Source: Utricularia gibba
Lineage: Eukaryota; Plantae; Magnoliophyta
DNA: 64,000 nucleotides
Direction: 5' to 3'
Assembly: GCA_002189035.1 (NCBI GenBank)
Contig: CM007990.1
Coordinates: 4,836,001 to 4,900,000 of the forward strand
In this document: in pieces, positions 458 through 40,673 of the stretch
How the letters are laid out: each line of letters begins with the position of its first letter
How positions within the stretch are numbered: position 1 is the first letter of the stretch
Position numbers and translations under genes: made by a program
Notes under the pieces: generated by a model
The model's database searches: none
Told to the model about the DNA's origin: nothing
The model's input: the letters and a program-made list of their open reading frames with translations, nothing else

Positions 458-3137
458 TTCACATATTTAGATTTATATTGTCGTATATCAAACATTTTAT
501 AAATTAAGTATATAATATCTAATACAAATACGATAATATATTGGTTCATGGTGGGTGATTTTTGTTATGGAGTATGGTTACGTATCAAAAATATGCTGGA
601 GAGTAGCTAATTGGGCTTGAGTTCTTGATGGGCGTAAAGGTCCCTCATCGACTGGGGCGTGACGGGCATGCTCATCATGTATGTCTCTGTTCATGGGATG
701 CGCACCCACGAATTGAATCTAATCTAACCTTCGCATCAAGTACTCTTGGGAGTTGGGACTCTACAAGCATCAATAATCTTTCGGTCTGTCTGAAAGAAAA
801 AAGTGAGTGTCTCTGGAGAATCTTATATGTGAATGTTGTTGCATGCTATCTGGCTGATGATGACCAAAAGGAAAAGGTGACGACACAGTCTTTCATCTCC
901 CACAATGTCGCGCTTTTGGCAGAGAGGCTCGACCCACCCACCCACCACCACCACTATCTCATTCCCTTTCTTCACCTCTGCTGCCGTTCATTGGACTAGT
1001 AATTGATGATGCTCGAACAGAATAGAGCAGAAGAGGAGGAGGGACTGACAGACGTCTTCGCCTGTTTTCGCAGAGCAGGCTTGGAGAGCGTTTATTCGCA
1101 CAACACAACACTAGAAAGGCTGCTTGTCCAAAAGGAGGAAGAGAGGAAGGAGGGGACAGTTGGGGTCCTACAGCGTATCCCACTGGGCGCCATCTCCAGC
1201 GCAGAGGATGGATATTCCAAACCAGGATCGATAACTTGCCCTCCCACGATGATTAATTGTGATCATTCTCTGGTTTGTTGCATTGAACTTGATCCTTATC
1301 TCCTAATCCTCCTTGTTGCTTTTCTCCCGACGCAAATGGAGGGCACGGAAGGGACCCACGTCCCATGTGAAGTGCTTCTAATATCAGAATCAACCCACAA
1401 TACAGACGCTCCTGTCGCCCACTCCATTATTAATCAAAATCAAAAGGTGATTGTCATCATCTTTTTTCTTCAACTACCGCCCTTGACTACTCCAAAACTG
1501 GGGTTACATTAATCAAGGACTTGATTATCACCTCCGTCCGTAAATTTATTTGTTGGGAAGAGGAGGAAAAACCCAGAGAACACAATCATTTACAGTGCAG
1601 TGCTGAAAGAGTGCCGACGCTGCGCAGTATATAGAATTACAAGAAGAGAAATGGGTCAGAGGGAGATTGAAGATATGCAGCAGCAGGTCCCAGAAATGAA
1701 TGATCTTGTCTCTCTCTTTTCACAGTGGCAACCGCAAATCCGGCATTTGCTATAATAACCACCATCTGGTGATTTTTCGTCAACTGTCTAGACAACAACC
1801 GTTGAAACCACGAGTATATTGCATTAAAAACACAAGTACTACAACCAAAATCCTTGCTCCATTTTTCAAGTCATGCTTGATACGTTAAAGTTATTAAATA
1901 AATAATTTATCATCGATAAATTAAAATAAACTATTCAAGTATTTAAAAAATTATAAATTATAATCTATATTATTTGTATATTTTAACTTCAAATGTGATC
2001 GTATGATTCATTAGATCTTTAATTTTAATATAAATAATTTATCATACATATATACAATATACATTACAACACAACATTATGGTTCTCTAATGCACCTTTT
2101 GATAAGATACATGTGCAAAAATAGTTTCGTGTTCCAGAGAGATCTTCTTCCTTGTATTTTTATACCGTTTGTATCTATAAAATCGTGTTTGGTATAATTT
2201 TATTTTTTAATTTTTATAGTCAATTGTCGAAAAATAATCTTAATTAAACATAATCAAACACATGTTAGATCATTAAAAAAAGGCACTGTTATTGAATCAA
2301 CGAACGCGGGCCCCACACATTTACACTCCAGGGGTCCAATTAAATGAAAATTAAAAAAAATTAGCTCCACGGTTATGCCCGATAAGGGAAGGGAGCGCAC
2401 CGACGGACAGAACCTACCGTACCTAACCTACCCATACCCATCTTTACTGGCCGCCGATTTAGAAAATTGGCCACGTTTTATTTTATTTAGCCTATGAAAA
2501 ATAAATTCAGGTGGATCCATTTTCTAAGTCCCAAATTTGGTCACGTGTTAATGTAACTTTACAACATAAAGAAAAACTAAAGTTGATCATTTTTTTAAAC
2601 CCTCCTTAATTTCCCAACTTTTCTTTTTTCATAATTTCAATTTGCCATTTGATCAAAATATGTTTAATTTATTTATCTCTCATAAAATAATATGTTATTA
2701 ATGCCATTTGTGGATAATCTGACGTGTAATGTTCCATTATGATTTTCTTATGTACATTTGGAATTTAAAACTCTATTTGTGGATAATGTGATATATGATG
2801 TCCTTTATGCAGCAAACATATTACTAAATCTTGCTAGCCAAATGGTGGTGGTGCTATTTAGATTCGAAAGAATGATTTAGGTTTCTAATTTCATTGAAAT
2901 AAATAATGTGAACTATTTTTGCTCAATTTTTAAATAGTGAAGATCAATTATAAATGATATTAAACAATATTCTATGATGACATCTTGTATTGATTAGAAA
3001 TGAAAAAATAAATATTATTAAATAATAGCATATTCCTAATCTTATGTAAATCTTTTACTTAAAAAAACATAAAATCGTGATTATTGAATACTCGAATTAA
3101 ATGATACCGTGCAAAACGAGCTTGTATCATGATAATA

Positions 3138-3350
3138 GGAGCCGTAGGAACCATGTAAAAGTACATAAATTTTTACTTGTTCCAAATTTTTTGAGGTAAT
3201 TCTAAACTATAACTAGTACAAAAGAAAAAAAAATCATTTTTTACTAATAATAATAATAAAATATCCAAATAATTTCGGGAGGATGACCACATGGCTTTGT
3301 ATTTTCCTCGTTCATGATGATATTTATTGAATAGGCGCCCTACCGGCTCC
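3138..3350. mobile_element. Small MITE, Tourist/PIF-Harbinger-like
   Basis: Imperfect terminal inverted repeats ggagccgtagg / cctaccggctcc, flanked by ATA on both sides (3135-3137, 3351-3353); AT-rich interior. Confidence 0.45.
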
Positions 3351-3770
3351 ATATGGATGTCGCCATCAGACAATAATATCCCTTATTTTACTTACTACAA
3401 ACAGATAAAAATACAAAGTTTAATGAAGATACTGATAAAAGTAGTTGCCACTCTCCATCTAGCACCCTATAAAAATATCTAATTTTTGCATAAAATAAAA
3501 ACTATATATTAAAAATATCGTACGCAGAGATTTTTGTGGCATCGGCGCCATTTAATTATTTTGTAATAAAACAGTTTTTTATTTAAATGAATAGTCTTTT
3601 GCAGTAAATACTAATTAAAAAATAAATAATTTTGAAAAAGATATTTGATGAGATTCAGAGGAGGGGCAGGGGTGATATTTAATTTTTTAATATTTTTTTA
3701 TTATAAAAAATATCAAATGAATTATATTTAAATTATAATTCGATTAATAAATTCTTAACTGGCGTTCCAC

Positions 3771-3778
3771 TATAAAAA
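3771..3778 (+). promoter_or_regulatory. TATA box of BURP gene A
   Basis: TATAAAAA about 60 nt upstream of ATG 3833. Confidence 0.55.
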
Positions 3779-3832
3779 GAAGGGTGGTTTGTAGGAAATG
3801 CATCAACGGTTTCTCTTCTTCTGAAAGCGAAA

Positions 3833-5803
3833 ATGGGGATCGTTTCCTACGCGGCGTCGGCTTCATCTCCGGCCCGTCGGCTCTTGTGCTTCCTTTTCAT
3901 CGCTTGCATTTCGATTTCCGAGGTTAGCAACGGAATTAAGTTCGGTATCCGGAATGAATCCTCACTGATTTCTGTGTGGCTTGCTGCAGGTATCCGGTGG
4001 AAGACGCCTGGCGGATTCAAATCCGTTCACACCCAGAGGTTATCTGCTACGGTATTGGGAGAAACGGATTGCCAATGATTTACCGAAACCGGCGCTTCTG
4101 ATTGACAAGGCGTCGCCGCTGACGGCGGCGCAGTACGCCGCCTTCAGTAAAATCGCTGGCGATAGGAACGCGCTTTCGGCGCAATTGCCGGAATTCTGTG
4201 CACGAGCGAAGCTCTTGTGTTTCCCTGATCTGTCGCCGAGTTTGGCGAAGCATGATACCGATGTTAATTTCGCGAGTTATACGGAACAGAACTTCACCAG
4301 CTACGGGGATGGCCGCGTAAAAGGAGCCGATGCTTTCCAGAAATACTCTGAAAACGGTAACGTGGTTGTGAATACTTTCCGGCGCTACAGTCGCGACTCC
4401 ACCGACCACAACGATGGTTTTGTGGCCTACGCCACTGGTTCCAACGTCGTGGACCAGAACTTCAACACCTACGGAACCAGCGCCGGCGGGGGTGAGGGCC
4501 AATTCAGTAATTACGGCAAGCAAACGAACAACCCCAATCTCAGATTCGCATCCTATTCCGATGGAGGCAATGACCGGGATCAACAATTCACCTCCTATTC
4601 CGACGAAGCCAACGCCGGAGACCAGACATTCGCTAGCTACGGGAAGAAGGGTAGCGACATCGACAACACATTCACAAGCTACGGAGGTGGATTATCCAAC
4701 GTAATCGGCAGCAATTTCAGGAACTACGGGGAGCATGGTAAAGAAGCAAATGATACATTCACCTCTTACGGGGACGACGGCAACGTGCCGCAGAATAATT
4801 TCCGCAACTACGGCACCGGCGGAAGCGGTGCTTCAGATACTTTCAAAAGTTACAGAAATCAATCCAACGTCGGGGATGACAGTTTCGAATCCTACGGCAA
4901 GGGATCTAGCAGCTCGGAGTTGGGATTCGTGAATTACGGCCAAAGTTTCAACGAGGGCACCGACAAATTCACCGGCTACGGCAAAGGCGCCAAGGCCACA
5001 ACCGTCGATTTCAAGATATACGGTGTGAACAACACGTTCAAAGAGTACGACAAGGCCACCCCCACCACATTCTCCAGTTACCGCAACGACAGCTCACCTC
5101 CGGCAGCATCCGTGGACGCAACAAAGGTAAGCAAATGGGTGGAACCGGGGAAATTCTTCAGGGAGGCGATGCTGAAAGAGGGCACTCTAATGCCGATGCC
5201 GGACATCCGAGACAAGATGCCGAAAAGATCATTCTTGCCGCGCGGCATCGTCTCGAAGCTGCCGTTTTCATCCTCAAAGATGCACGAGATCAAGAAGATT
5301 TTCCATGCAGGGGAGGAATCAAGCATTTCTAAAATGGCCGTCGATGCGCTGCACGACTGCGAACGCGCCCCGAGTGCGGGTGAAACGAAGCGGTGCGTGG
5401 CGTCCATCGAGGACATGATCGACTTCGCGACGTCCGTGTTGGGCCGGAGCGTGACGGTACGCTCCACCGACACAACCGCCGGCGCCAACTCTCAAGTCTT
5501 ACTGGCGAAGTAAAAGGGATCAACGGTGGCAACGTCACGATGTCGGTGTCGTGCCACCAAAGCCTGTATCCGTACATGCTCTACTACTGCCATTCGGTTC
5601 CCAAGGTCCGGGTCTACGAAGCGGATATCCTGGACCCGAACACCCGGTCCAAGATCAACCACGGCGTGGCTATTTGCCACCTGGACACCTCCTCATGGAG
5701 CCCAGATCATGGGGCCTTCATCGCCTTGGGCCCCAGCCCGGGTAAGATCGAAGTGTGTCATTGGATCTTCGAGAACGATATGACATGGGTCGTCGCGGAT
5801 TAA
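3833..5803 (+). CDS. BURP copy A: canonical polygalacturonase-1 non-catalytic beta subunit-like protein (about 634 aa if the frameshift is repaired)
   Basis: Exons 3833-3922 (signal peptide) and 3990-5803, GT-AG intron. Long array of ~14-aa FxxY repeats (FASY, FTSY, FQKY, FRRY, FNTY...), then WVEPGKFFRE and a BURP domain with CH-x10-CH-x27-CH-x25-CH-x8-W. A 1-nt deletion at ~5504 (ctggcgaag versus expected ctgggcgaa) shifts the frame before the CH motifs. Confidence 0.9.
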
Positions 5804-10000: not shown

Positions 10001-10150
10001 TCAATAATTGATGGGTAACCAATCACATGTCCATTTCTCCATGCAATGCACTCAGCCGCCACTGCCTGCCCAATGACACTATAAAGGAAGCTGCTTCGTT
10101 TCAGTTCCTGCATCCTCACTTGGTTCCCCTTCTCTTCTCTACAATCGGCC

Positions 10151-12611
10151 ATGTCTGCCATATCCTCGGCCGGCGCCCCTTCTCCTCAGCCGCTCCACCA
10201 CCGGCTCACGTTGCTGTGCATCCTCGCCTCCGTTCTGATCTCCAATGTAAGAAATCTTTTTCCTTTACTGTGGCTTCCCCAAAACCCAAGCATTATTCTG
10301 TATTTAATGATTGAAGGTGGTCGGGGTTATCGGAGTTGAGAACCTGTTGACGCCCAAAGCTTATGCCCTGAGCTACTGGGAGAAGCACGTCACCACCGGT
10401 CTACCCAAGTCCGAGTTTCTGATGGATAAGGCGTCCCCGCTCACCGCTGCCCAATACGCCACCTTCAACAAGATCGCCGACGATCAGAACGCCCTGTCGG
10501 CCCACATGCCGGAGCTCTGTTCACAGGCCAACCTTATGTGCTTTCCTAATTCCGCCGGCAGCGCCACCGAGAAGACGTCGGACATCGATTTTCACGGCTA
10601 CAACCATTACCGCCCCCGATCTACCGATGATCACCAGCAGGTAAAACGTTACATAATGAAAGGGTAAATAATTTTTACTGTTTTAATATGTATTTACTTT
10701 TACCCGCTTCTTTTAACAGGAAGATGCAAGGCTTGTTGCCAAGGATATCAGCTTCCACCGTTACCACCAAAAGGGTGGCCACAAAATGGTAAATTAACTA
10801 TAAAATTCGTTGCTTTTTCTATCAAGAAATAATTATTTTTCTAAAAAAAGGGAGAATATTAAAGGTTAAAAAAAAGAATTTTTACTAATTTACAGTATAT
10901 TATTACAGGAAGACGAGATAAAGCCTGAGGCAGTCCAAGATATCAGCTTTCACCGTTACCACCAAAAGGGTGGCCACAAAATGGTAAATTAGTTATAAAA
11001 TTCGTTGCTTTTTCTATTAAGAAATAATTATTTTTCTAAAAAAAGGGAGAATATTAAAGGTTAAAAAAAAGAATTTTTACTAATTTACAGTATATTATTA
11101 CAGGAAGACGAGATAAAGCCTGAGGCAGTCCAAGATATCAGCTTTCACCGTTACCACCAAAAGGGTGGCCACAAAATGGTAAATTAGTTATAAAATTCGT
11201 TGCTTTTTCTATTAAGAAATAATTATTTTTCTAAAAAAAGGAAGAATATTAAAGGTTAAAAAAAGAATTTTAACTAATTTACTGTATATTATTACAGGAA
11301 GACGAGATAAAGCCTGAAGCAGTCAAGGACATCAGCTTCAACCATTACCATCAAAAGGGAGGTCACAAACAGGTAAATTAAAAAATACCAACCTCTAACA
11401 GTAACAACAAGATTTTACTTTTTTTTTTTTTTTAACGTTACCGGTCTTCATGTTCACAGGAAGAGGAGGTGAAGCCCGAGGTCACAGATATCAGGTTTTC
11501 ACGCTACCACCAAAAGGGTGGCCACAAGAAGGTAAACCGGTTGCCCGAAGGTGACTAAAGTTTTTTACTGCTTATGAATTGTTTTGATCGTTTAAGCAGG
11601 AAGAAGTGAAGCCGGATATTAGCTTCACACACTATCACCAAAAGGGAGGACACAAAGAGGTAAACCGAGGTGAAATTTAATAAGCAGAGGGATAGAAATT
11701 TTTTAACTCTTTTTCCTTTCAGGAATTCACCGCGGCTCAATTGGTGGATATCAACCACTACCACAAGGACAGCCAAGTAGATGCTGCGGTAAGAAAGTTT
11801 TTACCGTGGGAAAAAATGTTGTTATGGTTAAATTCCGAAGGGTAACTTTTTTTTTTAACAGCGAGGGGTTGACACTGATATTCGCTTTAAGCGCTATAAC
11901 CACTACAAGAAGGAAACGGGGGATAGTAAAAAGGTTACCAATTGGGTGCCGCCGGGGATCTTCTTCAGGGAGGCGACGCTGAAGCCGGGAGCCGAGATAA
12001 CCATGCCCGACTTCACCGACAAGAAGCCGGCAAGGTCGTTCCTGCCGCGCGCCATCGTCTCAAAGCTGCCCTTCGCCTCCTCCAAGCTGCCTGATATCAA
12101 GAAGATCTTTCACGCCGGCGACGACTCAAGCATGTCCAAAATGTTCACCGAGGCACTCGGAGACTGCGAGCGGGAGCCCAACGTGGGCGAGACGAAGCGG
12201 TGCGTGGCGTCGATCGAGGGCATGGTCGACTTCGCCACCCTGGTGCTGGGCCAGAAGGTGGTCGCCCGTACAATGGAAAACAAGGCCGGATCCAACACCA
12301 ATGTCCTGCTGGGTGATGTGAAAGCCATCAACGGCGGGAGATTGACCAAGTCCGTTTCGTGCCACCAGAGCCTGTATCCCTACCTACTCTACTACTGCCA
12401 CTCGGTGAACGGCATCCGCGTCTACGAAGCCGATATCCTGGATGCAAAAACCAAGTCCAAGATCAACCATGCGGTGGCCATCTGCCACGAGGATACCTCT
12501 TCCTGGAGCGCCGATCACGCCGCCTTCGTTTCGTTGGGTTCCAGTCCCGGGAAGATCGAGGTCTGCCACTGGATCTTCGAGAACGATCTGACGTGGGTCA
12601 TTGCAGACTGA
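10151..12611 (+). CDS. BURP copy B: derived PG1beta-like protein with micro-exon-encoded His/Lys-rich FxxY repeats (~553 aa)
   Basis: Ten exons: 10151-10246, 10317-10640, 10720-10788, 10909-10983, 11104-11178, 11298-11372, 11460-11531, 11600-11659, 11723-11788, 11862-12611. All introns are GT-AG and phase 0, giving a continuous frame into WVPPGIFFRE and an intact BURP domain with four CH motifs. Confidence 0.88.
10789..11372 (+). repeat. Three tandem ~195-bp intron+exon units inside BURP B
   Basis: Units 10789-10983, 10984-11178 and 11179-11372. The first two are near-identical, including intron sequence. Confidence 0.95.
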
Positions 12612-19213: not shown

Positions 19214-20409
19214 ATGTCTCCCATATCCGCGGCCGCCGCCACTTCGCCTCAGCCGCTCCACCACCGGCTCACGTGGCTGTGCATCCTCGCCTCCGTTCTG
19301 ATCTCCAATGTAAGAAATCTTTTTCCTTTACTGCGGCTTCCCAAAACCCAAGCATTATTCTGTATTTAACAATTGAAGGTGGTCGGGGTTATCGGAGTTG
19401 AGAACCTTTTGACGCCCAAAGCTTATGCCCTGAGCTACTGGGAGAAGCACGTCACCAACAGTCTACCCAAGTCCGAGTTTCTGATGGATAAAGCGTCCCC
19501 GCTCACCGCAGCCCAATACGCCACCTTCAATAAGATCGCCGACGATCAGAACGCGCTGTCGGCCCACTTGCCGGAGTTTTGCTCACAGTCCAACCTTATG
19601 TGCTTTCCTAATTCCGCCGATAGCGTCACCGAGAACACTGAGGAAAAAATTGCCCGTCGCTACTGCGCTCGCTTCAATTATAGATTCGACTATAAATGCA
19701 GCTTCAAGAAGGGCCTGGGCGAGAATGAAAAGGTTACGAATTGGGTTCCCCCGGGATGTTCTTCAGGGAGGCGACACTGAAGCCCGGCGTCCTGATAACC
19801 ATGCCCGACTTCACCGACAAGAACCCCGCCAGGTCGTTCTTGCCGCGCACCATCGTCTCAAAGCTGCCCTTCGCCTCCTCCAAACTGGCCGATATCAAGA
19901 AGATCTTCCACGCCGGAGATCACCCAAGCAGGTCCCAAATGTTCACCGATGCACTCGACGACTGCGAACGGGAACCCAACGTGGGCGAGACGAAGCGGTG
20001 CGTGGCGTCGATCGAGGGCATGGTGGACTTCGCCACCCTGGTCCTGGGCCAGAAGGCTGTCCCCCGTACAATCGAGAACAAGGCCGGATCCAACACCATT
20101 GCCTTGCTGGGTGATGTGAAACCCATCAATGGCGGGAGATTGACCAAGTCCGTTTCGTGCCACAAGCGCCTGTATCCCTACCTACTCTACTACTGCCATT
20201 CAGTGAACGGCATCCGCCTCTATGAAGCCGATATCCTGGATGCAAAAACCAAGTCCAAGATCAACCATGCGGTGGCCATCTGTCACGAGGATACTTCTTC
20301 CTGGAGCGCCGACCACTCGGCGTTCGCGGCGTTGGGGTCTGGTCCCGGCAAGATCGAGGTCTGCCACTGGATCTTCGAGAACGATCTGATGTGGGTCATT
20401 GCAGACTGA
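19214..20409 (+). CDS. BURP copy D, close paralog of C, with a 1-nt frameshift
   Basis: Exons 19214-19309 and 19379-20409. C5 run at 19748-19752 versus C6 in copy C breaks WVPPG; otherwise open. Confidence 0.8.
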
Positions 20410-24543: not shown

Positions 24544-26109
24544 ATGCTTCCCATAACCTCATCGACGGCACCCGCCGCTTCTCGTCAGGGGCGCCTCCTC
24601 TTGTGGACGGCGGTCATCGTCTTCGCTCTAATTTCCAACGTGAGAGATCCCGAACTCGGTTCTGTTTCCTGGATTGAGTGAAGTGAAGTAGCTCACTTTT
24701 CTTTGTGATAATGGATGCAGGTGGGAAGGGCCGGAGGAGGAGTTCAGTTTGGTAAAACCGAGGATCATCAATTAACTCCTAGAGCTTATCTCCTTCGTTA
24801 CTGGGAAGAGCATGTCACTGGTGGCCTACCCAAATCGGAGTTCTTGATGGATAAGGCGTCGCGCCTCACGGCGGCGCAGTACGCTGAGTTCTTAAAGGTC
24901 TCCGATGATCCGAAAGCCCTGTCGGAGCGGTGGCCGGAGCTTTGTGCACAGGCTAACCTCATGTGCTTTCCCGATTCTGTGGTAAGTGTGAAGAACACCT
25001 CCTTGGTTATCGCTTTCATTCTCTACAACGAGTACCGCAGGGGCGGCTCTCACAAAAATCAAAAGGTAACAAGCGAAGTTTCTTCTTCAGCTGATGGAAG
25101 TAATTACAGGATTTAATTTTAAAATTTAAATTAAATAAATCTTTTTTGTAAGAAAAAAACATTTATTTTTATTTGAATTATTTTTCTTCCATTTATTATC
25201 AGGAAAATATAAACCCAGAATTACTGGATATCGATTTCCAGAATTACAACAAAGGAGGTCCTAAGAAGGTATTGAAATTATGCTGCAGATTATTGAAATT
25301 GTATTTTATCTGGAAAAAATGCATTTTTTTTTCATATTTGAAAGTTGGTATATTGTTTTGGACAGCGGGAGAAGCCGATATACTCCGGCACCAAATTCAG
25401 ACGCTACAACGTGTACCACAAGGACGCGGACGGCAACAAGCGGGTACCGCCGGGCATATTCTTCAGGGAGGCGGCGCTGAAATCAGGGGCCCCGGTGCTC
25501 ATGCCGGACTTCATAGACAGAAAGCCCATAAGGTCATTTCTGCCGCGCCGCATCATCTCCAAGCTGCCGTTCTCCTCCGACAAGATATCCGATATCAAGT
25601 TTATTTTTCATGCACAAGTCGACTCAAGCAAGTCCAAAATGTTCACAGAGGCAATCGAGGATTGCGCGCGAGCCCCTAACCGGGGCGAGACGAAGCTATG
25701 CGTGGCGTCGATCGAGGACATGATCGACTTCGCCACGATCGTCCTTGGCCGAGACGTGGTTGTTCGAACCATGGATGGTGCAGCAGGCTCCAATGCCACG
25801 GTGCTGCTGGGTAACGTCAGAGGAATCAACGGTGGAAGAGTGACCAAGTCCGTTTCGTGCCATCAAACCCTTTATCCCTACTTGCTCTACTACTGCCACT
25901 CCGTTAATGGCATTCGGGTCTATGAATCCGACCTCCTGGATCTGAAAACGAAGGCCAGGATCAACCATGGGGTTGCTGTTTGTCATGAGGATACTTCTTC
26001 CTGGAGCTCGAACCATCCGGCTTTCGCCGCCCTGGGCTCCGCCCCGGGTGAGATCGAGGTCTGTCATTGGATCTTTCAGAATGATCTGACATGGGTGGTT
26101 GCAGACTGA
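24544..26109 (+). CDS. BURP copy E (~416 aa)
   Basis: Exons 24544-24639, 24721-25065, 25203-25268, 25366-26109, all phase 0. Cores FILYNEY, FQNY, FRRYNVY; intact BURP domain. Confidence 0.88.
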
Positions 26110-37342: not shown

Positions 37343-38904
37343 ATGCTTCCCATAACCTCCTCGGCGGCACCCGCCGTTTCTCGTCAGGGGCGCCTCCACT
37401 TGTGGACGGTGGTCATCATCTTCGCTCTAATTTCCAACGTGAGAGATCCCGAACTCGGTTTTGTTTCCTGGACTGAATGAAGTAGCTTACTTTTCTATGT
37501 GATAATGGATACAGGTGGTAAGGGTCGGAGGAGGAGTTCATTCTGGTAAACCCGAGGATCATCTGTTAACTCCTAGAGCTTATCTCCTTCGTTACTGGGA
37601 AGAGCATGTCGCTGGTGGCTTACCCAAATCGGAGTTCTTGATGGATAAGGCGTCGCCCCTCACGGCGGCGCAGTACGCTGAGTTCTTAAAGGTCTCCGAT
37701 GATCCGAAAGCCCTGTCGGAGCGGTTGCCGGAGCTTTGTTCACAGGCTAACCTCATGTGCTTTCCCGATTCTAAGGAAAGTGTTAAGAACACATCATTGG
37801 TTATCGCTTTCATTCTCTACAACGAGTACAGCAGGGGCGGCTCTCAGAAAAATCAAAAGGTAACAAGCGAAGTTTCTTCTTCAGCTGGTTGAAGTAATTA
37901 CAGGATTTTAATTTTATAATTTAAAATAAATAAATCTTTTTTGTAAGAAAAAAACATTTATTCTTATTTGAATTATTTTTCTTCCATCTATTATCAGGAA
38001 AATATAAACCCAGAATTACTGGATGTCGACTTCCAGAATTACAACAAAGGAGGTCCTAAGAAGGTATTGAAATTACGCTGCAGATTATTGAAATTGTATT
38101 TTATGTGGAAAAAAAATGCATTTTTTTCATATTTCAAAGTTGGTATATTGTTTTGGACAGCCGGAGAAGCCGATATACTCCGGCACCAAATTCAAACGCT
38201 ACAACGAGTACCACAAGAACGCGGACGGCAACAACCGGGTACCGCCGGGCATATTCTTCAGGGAGGCGGCGCTGAAATCCGGGGCCCCGATGCTCATGCC
38301 GGACTTCATAGACAGAAAGCCCATAAGGTCATTTCTGCCGCGCCGCATCATCTCTAAGCTACCGTTCTCCTCCGACAAGATATCCGATATCAAGTTTATT
38401 TTTCACGCGCAAGACGACTCAAGCAAGTCCAAAATGTTCACGGAGGCAATCGAGGATTGCGAGCGAGCCCCTAACCGGGGCGAGACGAAGCGATGCGTGG
38501 CGTCGATCGAGGACATGATCGACTTCGCCACAATCGTCCTTGGCCGAGACGTGGTTGTTCGAACCATGGATGGTGCAGCAGGCTCCAATGCCACGGTGCT
38601 ACTGGGTAACGTCAGAGGAATCAACGGTGGAAGAGTGACCAAGTCCGTTTCGTGCCATCAAACCCTTTATCCCTACTTGCTCTACTACTGCCACTCCGTT
38701 AATGGCATTCGGGTCTATGAATCCGACCTCCTTGATCTGAAAACGAAGGCCAAGATCAACCATGGGGTTGCTGTTTGTCATGAGGATACTTCTTCCTGGA
38801 GCTCGAACCATCCGGCTTTCGCCGCCCTGGGCTCCGCCCCGGGTGAGATCGAGGTCTGTCATTGGATCTTTCAGAATGATCTGACATGGGTGGTTGCAGA
38901 CTGA
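37343..38904 (+). CDS. BURP copy G (~416 aa), close paralog of E
   Basis: Exons 37343-37438, 37515-37859, 37998-38063, 38161-38904; same structure as E. Confidence 0.88.
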
Positions 38905-39189: not shown

Positions 39190-40673
39190 ATGGCGTCTGA
39201 TCATCCACTCCACCGCCGCCTGATGTGGCTGTTGGCCTTCGCCGTACCTCTAATTTCCCATGTAAGGAATCATAAGCTTCCACGCTTTGCTCATCTGTTA
39301 GTTGCACAACTAGTTGCACGGTGTTTAACCAAAACACAAATATTATCCTGAAGGTGGGAAGGGTCGCCGGAGGAGGAGAGAAAATTCCGTCGACGCCTAA
39401 AGCTTATCTGTTTAGTTACTGGGAAAAGCATGTCACCAACGATGCACCGCTCTCGGGGTTCTTGCTGGATAAGGCGTCACCGCTCACGGCGGCGCAGTTC
39501 GCCGAATTCCGTAAGATTGCCGATGACCCGAAAGCCCTGTCGCAACGACTGCCGGTGTTCTGCGCACAGGCGAACCTCATGTGTTTCAAACACCACGAGG
39601 ACTCCCCAGAACTGGAAGATCAAAAGGTAAAAAGCAGCTTGTGTATAAATTCATTTTTTAATTCCTTCTGTTTTCTTGAGCATGTTTATTTTTAAAACAG
39701 GAAAATAAAACGCCTCAATTCCAGACATACAACCAAAAGGGAGGCAGTAAAGAGGTAAACACGTTGAAATCGTGCATTTATTACAAAATTCAAATTTAAA
39801 TATTAATAAAATAATAATTTATAATAGCGAAATGAATTTAGTTAATTATTTTTTGACAAATATTTTTGTTTAATTTGTACTTAAAGTGCAAAGCCGTGTT
39901 CTGAATAGGGACATGAAAAGCCTCCGGCGGACTTTCCTCCGCAGTTCAAAGAATACAACCACTACCACAAGGACTTCGAAGGCTACAAGGGGATAAACAA
40001 GCCGGCGGCGCCGCCGGGGATATTCTTCCGGGAGGCCATGTTGAAACCCGGTACCCAGTTGCGGATGCCGGATTTTATCGATCAGAAGCCCAGAAGGTCA
40101 TTCTTGCCCCGCGCCATCGTCTCGAAGCTGCCCTTCGCCTCCTCCAAGATCTCCGAAATCAGAACTATTTTTCACGCTGCGAATGACTCAAGCATGTCCA
40201 AAATGATCTCCGACGCGACCCAGGGCTGCGAGCGTGTCCCCAACCGAGGCGAAACCAAGCGGTGCGTGGCGTCGATCGAGGACATGATCGACTTCGCCAC
40301 CTTCATCCTGGGCCGAAACGCGGAAGTTCGAACCATGGATACCCCGGCCGGCTCCAATGGCGTGATCTTACTGGGAGACGTGAAAGGGATCAATGGTGGA
40401 GAAGTGACCAACTCAGTCTCGTGTCATCAGACACTCTATCCGTACCTGCTCTACTACTGCCACTCTGTCAATTTCGTCCGGGTCTACGAAGCCGACATCC
40501 TGGATCCTAAAACGAAGTCCCAGGTTAACCATGGCGTTGCCATCTGCCATGAGGATACTTCTTCCTGGAGCCCCGACCACGCAGCCTTCCAGGCACTGCG
40601 CTCCAGCCCGGGAAAGACAGAGGTCTGCCATTGGATCTTCCAGAACGATCTGATTTGGGTTGCTGCAGATTGA
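39190..40673 (+). CDS. BURP copy H (~387 aa)
   Basis: Exons 39190-39261, 39354-39626, 39701-39754, 39909-40673, all phase 0. Cores FQTY, FKEYNHY, FEGY; intact BURP domain. Confidence 0.87.

Follow-up and report, generated by a model that had tools for sequence, protein, structure and literature searches.

The 64,000-nucleotide stretch of the Utricularia gibba genome analysed here (assembly GCA_002189035.1, contig CM007990.1, positions 4,836,001 to 4,900,000 of the forward strand; below, the window) raises the question of why a BURP gene should carry its peptide repeats as a run of small, symmetric exons, one unit to an exon, and whether the consequences of that design are to be sought in the splicing of the transcript or in the evolution of the gene. 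The gene in question, gene B, lies on the forward strand at positions 10151–12611 of the window, where the gene model and the junctions in RNA contigs define ten exons with a coding sequence of 1662 nucleotides (nt) for a protein of 553 amino acids (aa). We consider it likely that B is a lineage-specific descendant of the PG1-beta-like BURP proteins whose domain of Phe-x-x-Tyr (FxxY) repeats has been rebuilt as symmetric phase-0 exons, constitutively spliced and changed in number by recombination, and that its product is a probable self-modifying precursor.

The exon structure is the foundation of this reading. Exon 1 (10151–10246) supplies the start codon and a hydrophobic N-terminal segment that is probably a signal peptide, and exon 2 (10317–10640) encodes a conserved N-terminal segment that terminates in a unit numbered 0 (DIDFHGYNHY...). 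Six of the seven small exons that follow are each defined by translation, gene model and RNA: E3 (10720–10788, 69 nt, EDARLVAKDISFHRYHQKGGHKM), E4 (10909–10983, 75 nt, EDEIKPEAVQDISFHRYHQKGGHKM), E6 (11298–11372, 75 nt, EDEIKPEAVKDISFNHYHQKGGHKQ), E7 (11460–11531, 72 nt, EEEVKPEVTDIRFSRYHQKGGHKK), E8 (11600–11659, 60 nt, EEVKPDISFTHYHQKGGHKE) and E9 (11723–11788, 66 nt, EFTAAQLVDINHYHKDSQVDAA), the last a degenerate unit without FxxY. The remaining one, E5 (11104–11178, 75 nt), is identical to E4 and is seen joined to E6 in RNA run X7. Exon 10 (11862–12611) opens on the last FxxY unit (DIRFKRYNHY) and continues through the BURP domain (Pfam PF03181) to the stop codon. All seven small exons are preceded by AG, start with GAA, are followed by GT, lack stop codons and have lengths divisible by three, with (c/t)ag acceptors and gtaa donors; the acceptor of exon 10 reads aacag/CGAGGG at 11862 (here and below a slash within a motif marks a boundary). 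All nine introns run from GT to AG and are in phase 0, and the small exons make up 492 of the 1662 coding nt, or 30%. The sequence-only reading of this DNA had called seven consecutive exons of 69, 75, 75, 75, 72, 60 and 66 nt with these boundaries and this phase, and it proves correct to the base, with RNA joints at all nine introns. Such a cluster is more than chance would give: across the 64-kb window the pattern AG/GAA, 54–78 nt in frame, /GT occurs 24 times on the forward and 19 times on the reverse strand, and eight of the 24 fall inside 1.2 kb of gene B (the seven exons plus one alternative donor), where the rate in the rest of the window predicts about 0.3. Only three of the other matches in the window contain F-x-x-Y, all of them exons of paralogous genes.

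The RNA evidence comes from assembled contigs of four runs, X1, X3, X7 and X8, from four labelled organisms, placed on the gene B locus. Joints of the GT..AG type are present at every predicted intron (9/9); that between exons 1 and 2 (10246 to 10317) occurs in all four runs and that between exon 2 and E3 in runs X1 and X3. A 487-nt contig covers exon 1, exon 2 and E3, and a contig of 1163 nt runs through E6, E7, E8, E9 and E10 with zero mismatches, while purely intronic bins have a depth of about zero. Of the words sampled from the 2.6-kb locus the runs contain 47–58%, close to the share of it that is exonic, and word depth in run X1 reaches 2000–5000. The joints, the multi-exon contigs and the empty intron bins therefore establish the ten exons as a real structure, beyond prediction, in a gene whose transcripts are abundant. 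A reading of B as an artefact or pseudogene was rejected, given its intact open reading frame, the presence of all junctions in RNA and its high expression. Upstream lies a TATA-like element (ctataaagg, at about 10081), and RNA contigs begin at 10129–10149. In runs X7 and X8 (labelled organisms C and D) no contig with a likeness of at least 92% covers 10564–10845, which takes in the end of exon 2 and E3, while E6–E10 match the window without a difference; in its 5' part the repeat region may vary from one of these RNA-source organisms to another.

As all small exons are in phase 0 and multiples of three, any subset of them could be skipped in frame; the sequence-only reading had pointed this out, and arithmetically it is true. 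It invites the alternative view that the seven symmetric exons form an alternative-splicing cassette in which regulated skipping varies the number and kind of units, a view to which two further observations lend themselves: the small exons begin with purine-rich GAAGA, a type of motif that may act as a splicing enhancer, and the skipping of E4 or E5 would be undetectable in short contigs because the two are identical. As far as assembled RNA can tell, the splicing of gene B is nevertheless constitutive. None of the distinguishable skip junctions (E2–E4, E5–E7, E6–E8, E7–E9, E8–E10 and others) was found in the contigs of the four runs, even at depths above 2000, and run X1 still lists a contig at depth 4.7 beside contigs above 2000. 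The contig of the E4/E5-type exon has 1.7–3.3 times the depth of neighbouring single-copy exons, which is weak evidence for the usual inclusion of both copies. Moreover, the splice sites are of strong consensus (cag/G, G/gtaa), and the introns are AT/U-rich, with a GC content of 17–38% as against 45–53% in the small exons. Low-GC introns between exons of higher GC are the usual plant signal for efficient splice recognition, and here they speak against frequent skipping. The cassette is thus unsupported rather than refuted, and seems to us quite unlikely. We would give an even more sceptical answer to its fullest form, a splicing-programmable precursor in which the choice of exons by tissue or stress would set which and how many FxxY units reach the fused copper-dependent BURP domain. 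If true, this would be a transcript-level diversification of a ribosomal peptide or modified-protein product, and it might have stayed hidden, the E4/E5-type exons being indistinguishable in short reads.

A single non-canonical joint was seen in the four runs. It connects 10784 to 11598 with the letters CA between them, occurs in run X1 at depth 4.7, and reconstructs to GGC CAC AAC AAG/GAA GAA GTG, or G-H-N-K/E-E-V. We rejected it as an exon skip: it lies two mismatches from the E5–E8 product, its 29-nt left flank is like E3, E4 or E5 and not like E7, and it fits no exon end in the window. Probably it is the transcript of a second expressed B-like gene with a different order of units.

If the exons are spliced constitutively, the significance of their design would lie elsewhere, and a comparison of the units and their introns points to the history of the gene. 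Tandem Repeats Finder reports a 195-bp exon-plus-intron tandem array at 10739–11380 of the forward strand, with 3.3 copies and 95% matches. Within it E4 and E5 do not differ, all four differences between array units 2 and 3 being intronic, and introns 3–5 are 94–97% identical to one another. The remaining intron pairs are only 40–59% identical, against a shuffled baseline of 48%. Identity among the small exons ranges from 0.66 to 1.0, and the older exons are 66–84% identical. The older introns have thus been randomised and the exons conserved, and with these introns at baseline it follows that the older units have been held by selection on the peptide; the near-identity of the array units, introns included, means that the newest arose when an exon and its intron were duplicated together. 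The sequence-only reading had attributed three of the exons to a very recent 195-bp tandem duplication of this kind. The origin stands, and the recency holds for the E4/E5 pair alone; it does not hold for the first array unit, which joins in mid-exon, inside E3, where the 5' half is older, and E3 is 80% identical to E4. The array of gene B grew from a single ancestral small exon through tandem exon-plus-intron duplications, with the E4/E5 pair as the latest step. It is plausible that unequal recombination between the near-identical introns gains or loses whole units without ever breaking the reading frame. In this model the number of units would be free to drift between gene copies and accessions, and it is above all in evolution that the exon design would have its effect.

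The ancestry of the unit can be followed in the genes around B, which is one of eight BURP genes (A–H) on the forward strand between 3990 and 40670, within 37 kb. A maximum-likelihood tree of BURP domains unites B–H in a single clade (99/95), branching as H,(E,G),(B,(F,(C,D))), which is nested within a 96/92 group of PG1-beta-like proteins from eudicots. One homologous small exon on the forward strand, read from sequence, is present in each of the paralogs E, G and H: in E it has 66 nt (25203–25268, ENINPELLDIDFQNYNKGGPKK), in G likewise 66 nt (37998–38063) and in H 54 nt (39701–39754, ENKTPQFQTYNQKGGSKE). All three share the boundaries (cag/GAAAAT...AAG/gta) and phase 0, and they encode ..F-Q-x-Y-N-(Q)-K-G-G-x-K. 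Such exons are invisible on an open-reading-frame track. Genes C, D and F have no intron at this site, and in them the repeat region is replaced by a short Cys/aromatic-rich segment. With one homologous small exon in each of E, G and H, the design of a unit on an exon of its own is older than B. The most parsimonious history would place one such unit already in the ancestor of B–H, from which B would have multiplied it and the lineage of F, C and D lost it.

Copy A provides the contrast. Its exon 2, of canonical PG1-beta-like type (3990–5800, forward strand, with frame changes near 5498–5504), carries 21 FxxY repeats within one exon, so that the difference from B noted in the sequence-only reading is borne out; these repeats are of the canonical 14-aa type, against the 20–25-aa His-rich type of B. 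The BURP domain of A is matched by tblastn in different frames at 5115–5504 and 5498–5800, the first match running into VLLAK-stop, and the frame change is either that of a pseudogene or a 1-nt assembly error. In copy D (19640–19760) the frame changes at the conserved WVPPG/FFRE junction just upstream of the BURP domain, while its near twin C is intact; D is a possible pseudogene.

The units themselves follow a recognisable plan. Translation bears out six units and a degenerate seventh, as first proposed: six of the seven small exons encode [E-D/E-x-x-K-P-E-x-x]-D-I-S/R-F-x-x-Y-H-Q-K-G-G-H-K-x, and in E9 the Phe and Tyr of FxxY have been lost. E9 is a degenerate member of a second flavour (..N-H-Y-H-K-D..), the same one that closes exon 2 and opens exon 10. 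The protein as a whole has eight FxxY motifs, at residues 124, 152, 177, 202, 227, 251, 271 and 313, and F-x-x-Y is the most conserved element over all units of B and the exons of its paralogs. Only B has the His residues (GGH, Y-H); where its units read KGGHK, the homologous exons of the paralogs E, G and H have KGGPKK or KGGSKE. Each His-rich unit contains K-G-G-H-K, and a cut behind the first Lys would leave Gly-Gly-His at the new N-terminus. This tripeptide is, at an N-terminus, a classic Cu(II)/Ni(II) binding motif, and it is a matter of speculation whether cleavage before GGH exposes such a site. Metal binding by the units, which the sequence-only reading had also suggested, is plausible as pure inference from the HxxH and GGH spacings, and to call the units cores is likewise to infer.

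The C-terminal part places the gene in the BURP family. Exon 10 matches the Pfam BURP profile over positions 1–215 of 216 (PF03181, E = 6.1e-65, 219 bits against a cutoff of 27), and the motif read from its translation, CH-x10-CH-x27-CH-x25-CH, conforms to the family pattern CH-x10-CH-x25-27-CH-x25-26-CH. By sequence its only relative in the PDB is AhyBURP, the copper-dependent BURP peptide cyclase of peanut (8sy2/8sy3, 4e-13, all four CH motifs aligned). An AF2 model of exon 10 has a BURP fold (predicted local distance difference test score, pLDDT, 86; predicted template modelling score, pTM, 0.81), and a Foldseek search with it likewise matched only 8sy2/8sy3 (E ~1e-12, template modelling score 0.53–0.66). 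The best database matches are named PG1-beta-like, the best among Lamiaceae being a protein of Salvia splendens (P0157) with short repeats. B agrees with the PG1-beta-like subfamily in the phylogenetic placement of its BURP domain and in having a central FxxY repeat domain. It departs from it in its repeat period, 20–25 aa with eight motifs as against 14 aa with about 20 repeats, and in its ten exons, where the subfamily has a two-exon gene. The exon number of canonical PG1-beta-like genes is two in AtPGL1-3 (PMC4460304) and “mainly two” across the subfamily (PMC6102523), and that of BURP genes generally is one to four (PMC4460304, PMC6102523). In full-text literature searches we found no description of an exon-per-repeat BURP gene or of the peptide motifs of gene B.

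What is known of related proteins enables us to propose a model for the function of B. In tomato, mature PG1-beta consists of nothing but the FxxY domain (PMC4460304, citing Zheng 1992), and every Phe identified in the FxxY of mature beta-PG carries a change of -2 Da, read as didehydro-Phe, for which no responsible enzyme has been named (PMC5313189). In other subfamilies the BURP domain works as a copper-dependent oxidative cyclase, its substrate in cis being the Tyr- or Trp-containing repeats of its own polypeptide, and the core peptide of AhyBURP reacts in cis (both in the review PMC11253845). Taken together, the -2 Da Phe of PG1-beta and the in-cis action of the BURP cyclases make it most likely that the BURP domain of B modifies its own FxxY units. 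In this model the protein would be a secretory precursor like PG1-beta, and its BURP domain, with four Cys-His copper-site motifs intact, would probably oxidise the eight FxxY motifs of its own repeat domain. What results would be a modified polypeptide of His/Lys-rich repeats, destined for the cell wall or vacuole and possibly able to bind metal.

Two other functions could be drawn from the same features. One is that B is a strict fused burpitide precursor, in which the core of each unit, for example around F-H-R-Y, would be macrocyclised through its Tyr and excised as a small cyclic peptide. In its favour, a single polypeptide combines Tyr-containing repeats with an intact BURP domain C-terminal to them, expression is very high, the gene sits in a tandem cluster of diverging BURP genes, and cross-links from Tyr-O to C-beta are within the repertoire of the BURP cyclases (PMC12186524, PMC11253845). 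The BURP domain of B, however, groups with the PG1-beta-like proteins and not with the characterised cyclases, sharing 23% identity with AhyBURP. We also know of no small peptide from the plant that carries gene B. Moreover, the PG1-beta repeat domain is retained as a protein and not cut into peptides (PMC5313189, PMC4460304), and the repeats of known fused precursors lie inside one exon (PMC12037056), all of which makes this function an unlikely one for B. The opposite view would see in the repeat domain an unmodified His/Lys-rich spacer that binds metal or pectin, with FxxY as a relic and the BURP domain serving for targeting or some other role. Among the 164 residues encoded by the seven small exons are 19 His and 21 Lys, spacings such as HxxH and GGH may resemble metal-binding motifs, and the BURP protein SALI3-2 is reported to raise tolerance of Cd and Cu (cited in PMC11253845). 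Yet it is the supposed relic, F-x-x-Y, that is conserved most strongly over units and paralog exons, while in E, G and H the His residues are not kept, and all four CH motifs of B are intact. We regard the unmodified spacer as very improbable, and return to the constitutively spliced, probably self-modifying PG1-beta-like precursor as the likely reading.

Several points weigh against that reading. Assembled contigs omit rare variants and cannot count the identical exons E4 and E5, and the small exons of E, G and H are known from sequence alone. The steps at the level of the protein (secretion, modification of FxxY and destination) are argued by analogy with the family, and carrying the didehydro-Phe modification over to B is an extrapolation from a 14-aa PG1-beta repeat to His/Lys-rich units of 20–25 aa. 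No FxxY unit is docked on the BURP cleft in the AF2 model of exon 10, in which residues 1–25 are disordered (pLDDT below 50); the model is uninformative on this matter, speaking neither for nor against docking. Finally, neither an exhaustive HMMER search of cluster representatives nor a word-index search returned a homologue above 67% identity to exon 10, nor did they return the paralogs of the gene cluster itself, and the source species and its close relatives seem to be absent from those protein collections.

Comparison with known systems helps to place the gene. The micro-exon genes of Schistosoma have exons of 6–36 nt, which account for the greater part of the coding sequence and for which alternative splicing has been demonstrated. 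Like them, B has a run of symmetric exons for what is probably a secreted protein, in which in-frame skipping would be possible. The analogy drawn in the sequence-only reading holds for this symmetry and fails on size (60–75 nt against at most 36 nt) and on the share of the coding sequence (30%); with skipping not seen in contigs and no homology between the two, B is not a micro-exon gene in the Schistosoma sense. [quoted passage not shown] They differ from B in their Gly/Asn-rich units of 14 aa with about 21 FxxY motifs, against its His/Lys-rich units with eight. The fused burpitide cyclases (AhyBURP/Sali3-2, LbaLycA, KjaBURP and SkrBURP) resemble B in having Tyr-containing repeats fused to a BURP domain with a copper site of four CH motifs. 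They belong to another subfamily, B being 20–23% identical to AhyBURP, and the expansion of their single-exon repeats is thought to occur by slipped-strand mispairing (PMC12037056), whereas B has a unit per exon and duplicates exon plus intron. The ST or DUF2775 proteins, putative split-burpitide precursors, resemble B as secreted plant proteins with tandem repeats, theirs being of 25–26 aa and linked to Tyr cross-linking chemistry (PMC11991032). They are unlike B in that their repeats all lie in the second exon (PMC11991032), in an unrelated family without a BURP domain.

The finding is one of specialist interest and changes no paradigm. Work on BURP genes now treats them as encoding copper-dependent peptide cyclases joined to repeated substrates of their own, and changes of repeat number in them are usually ascribed to slippage within one exon. 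Gene B represents a different route, in which each unit occupies a symmetric exon, so that the reading frame is kept automatically and near-identical introns are left as substrates for recombination. It could also serve in the search for the enzyme behind the unexplained -2 Da modification of Phe in PG1-beta proteins, being a compact FxxY substrate that is expressed at a very high level and joined to a BURP domain of the PG1-beta type.

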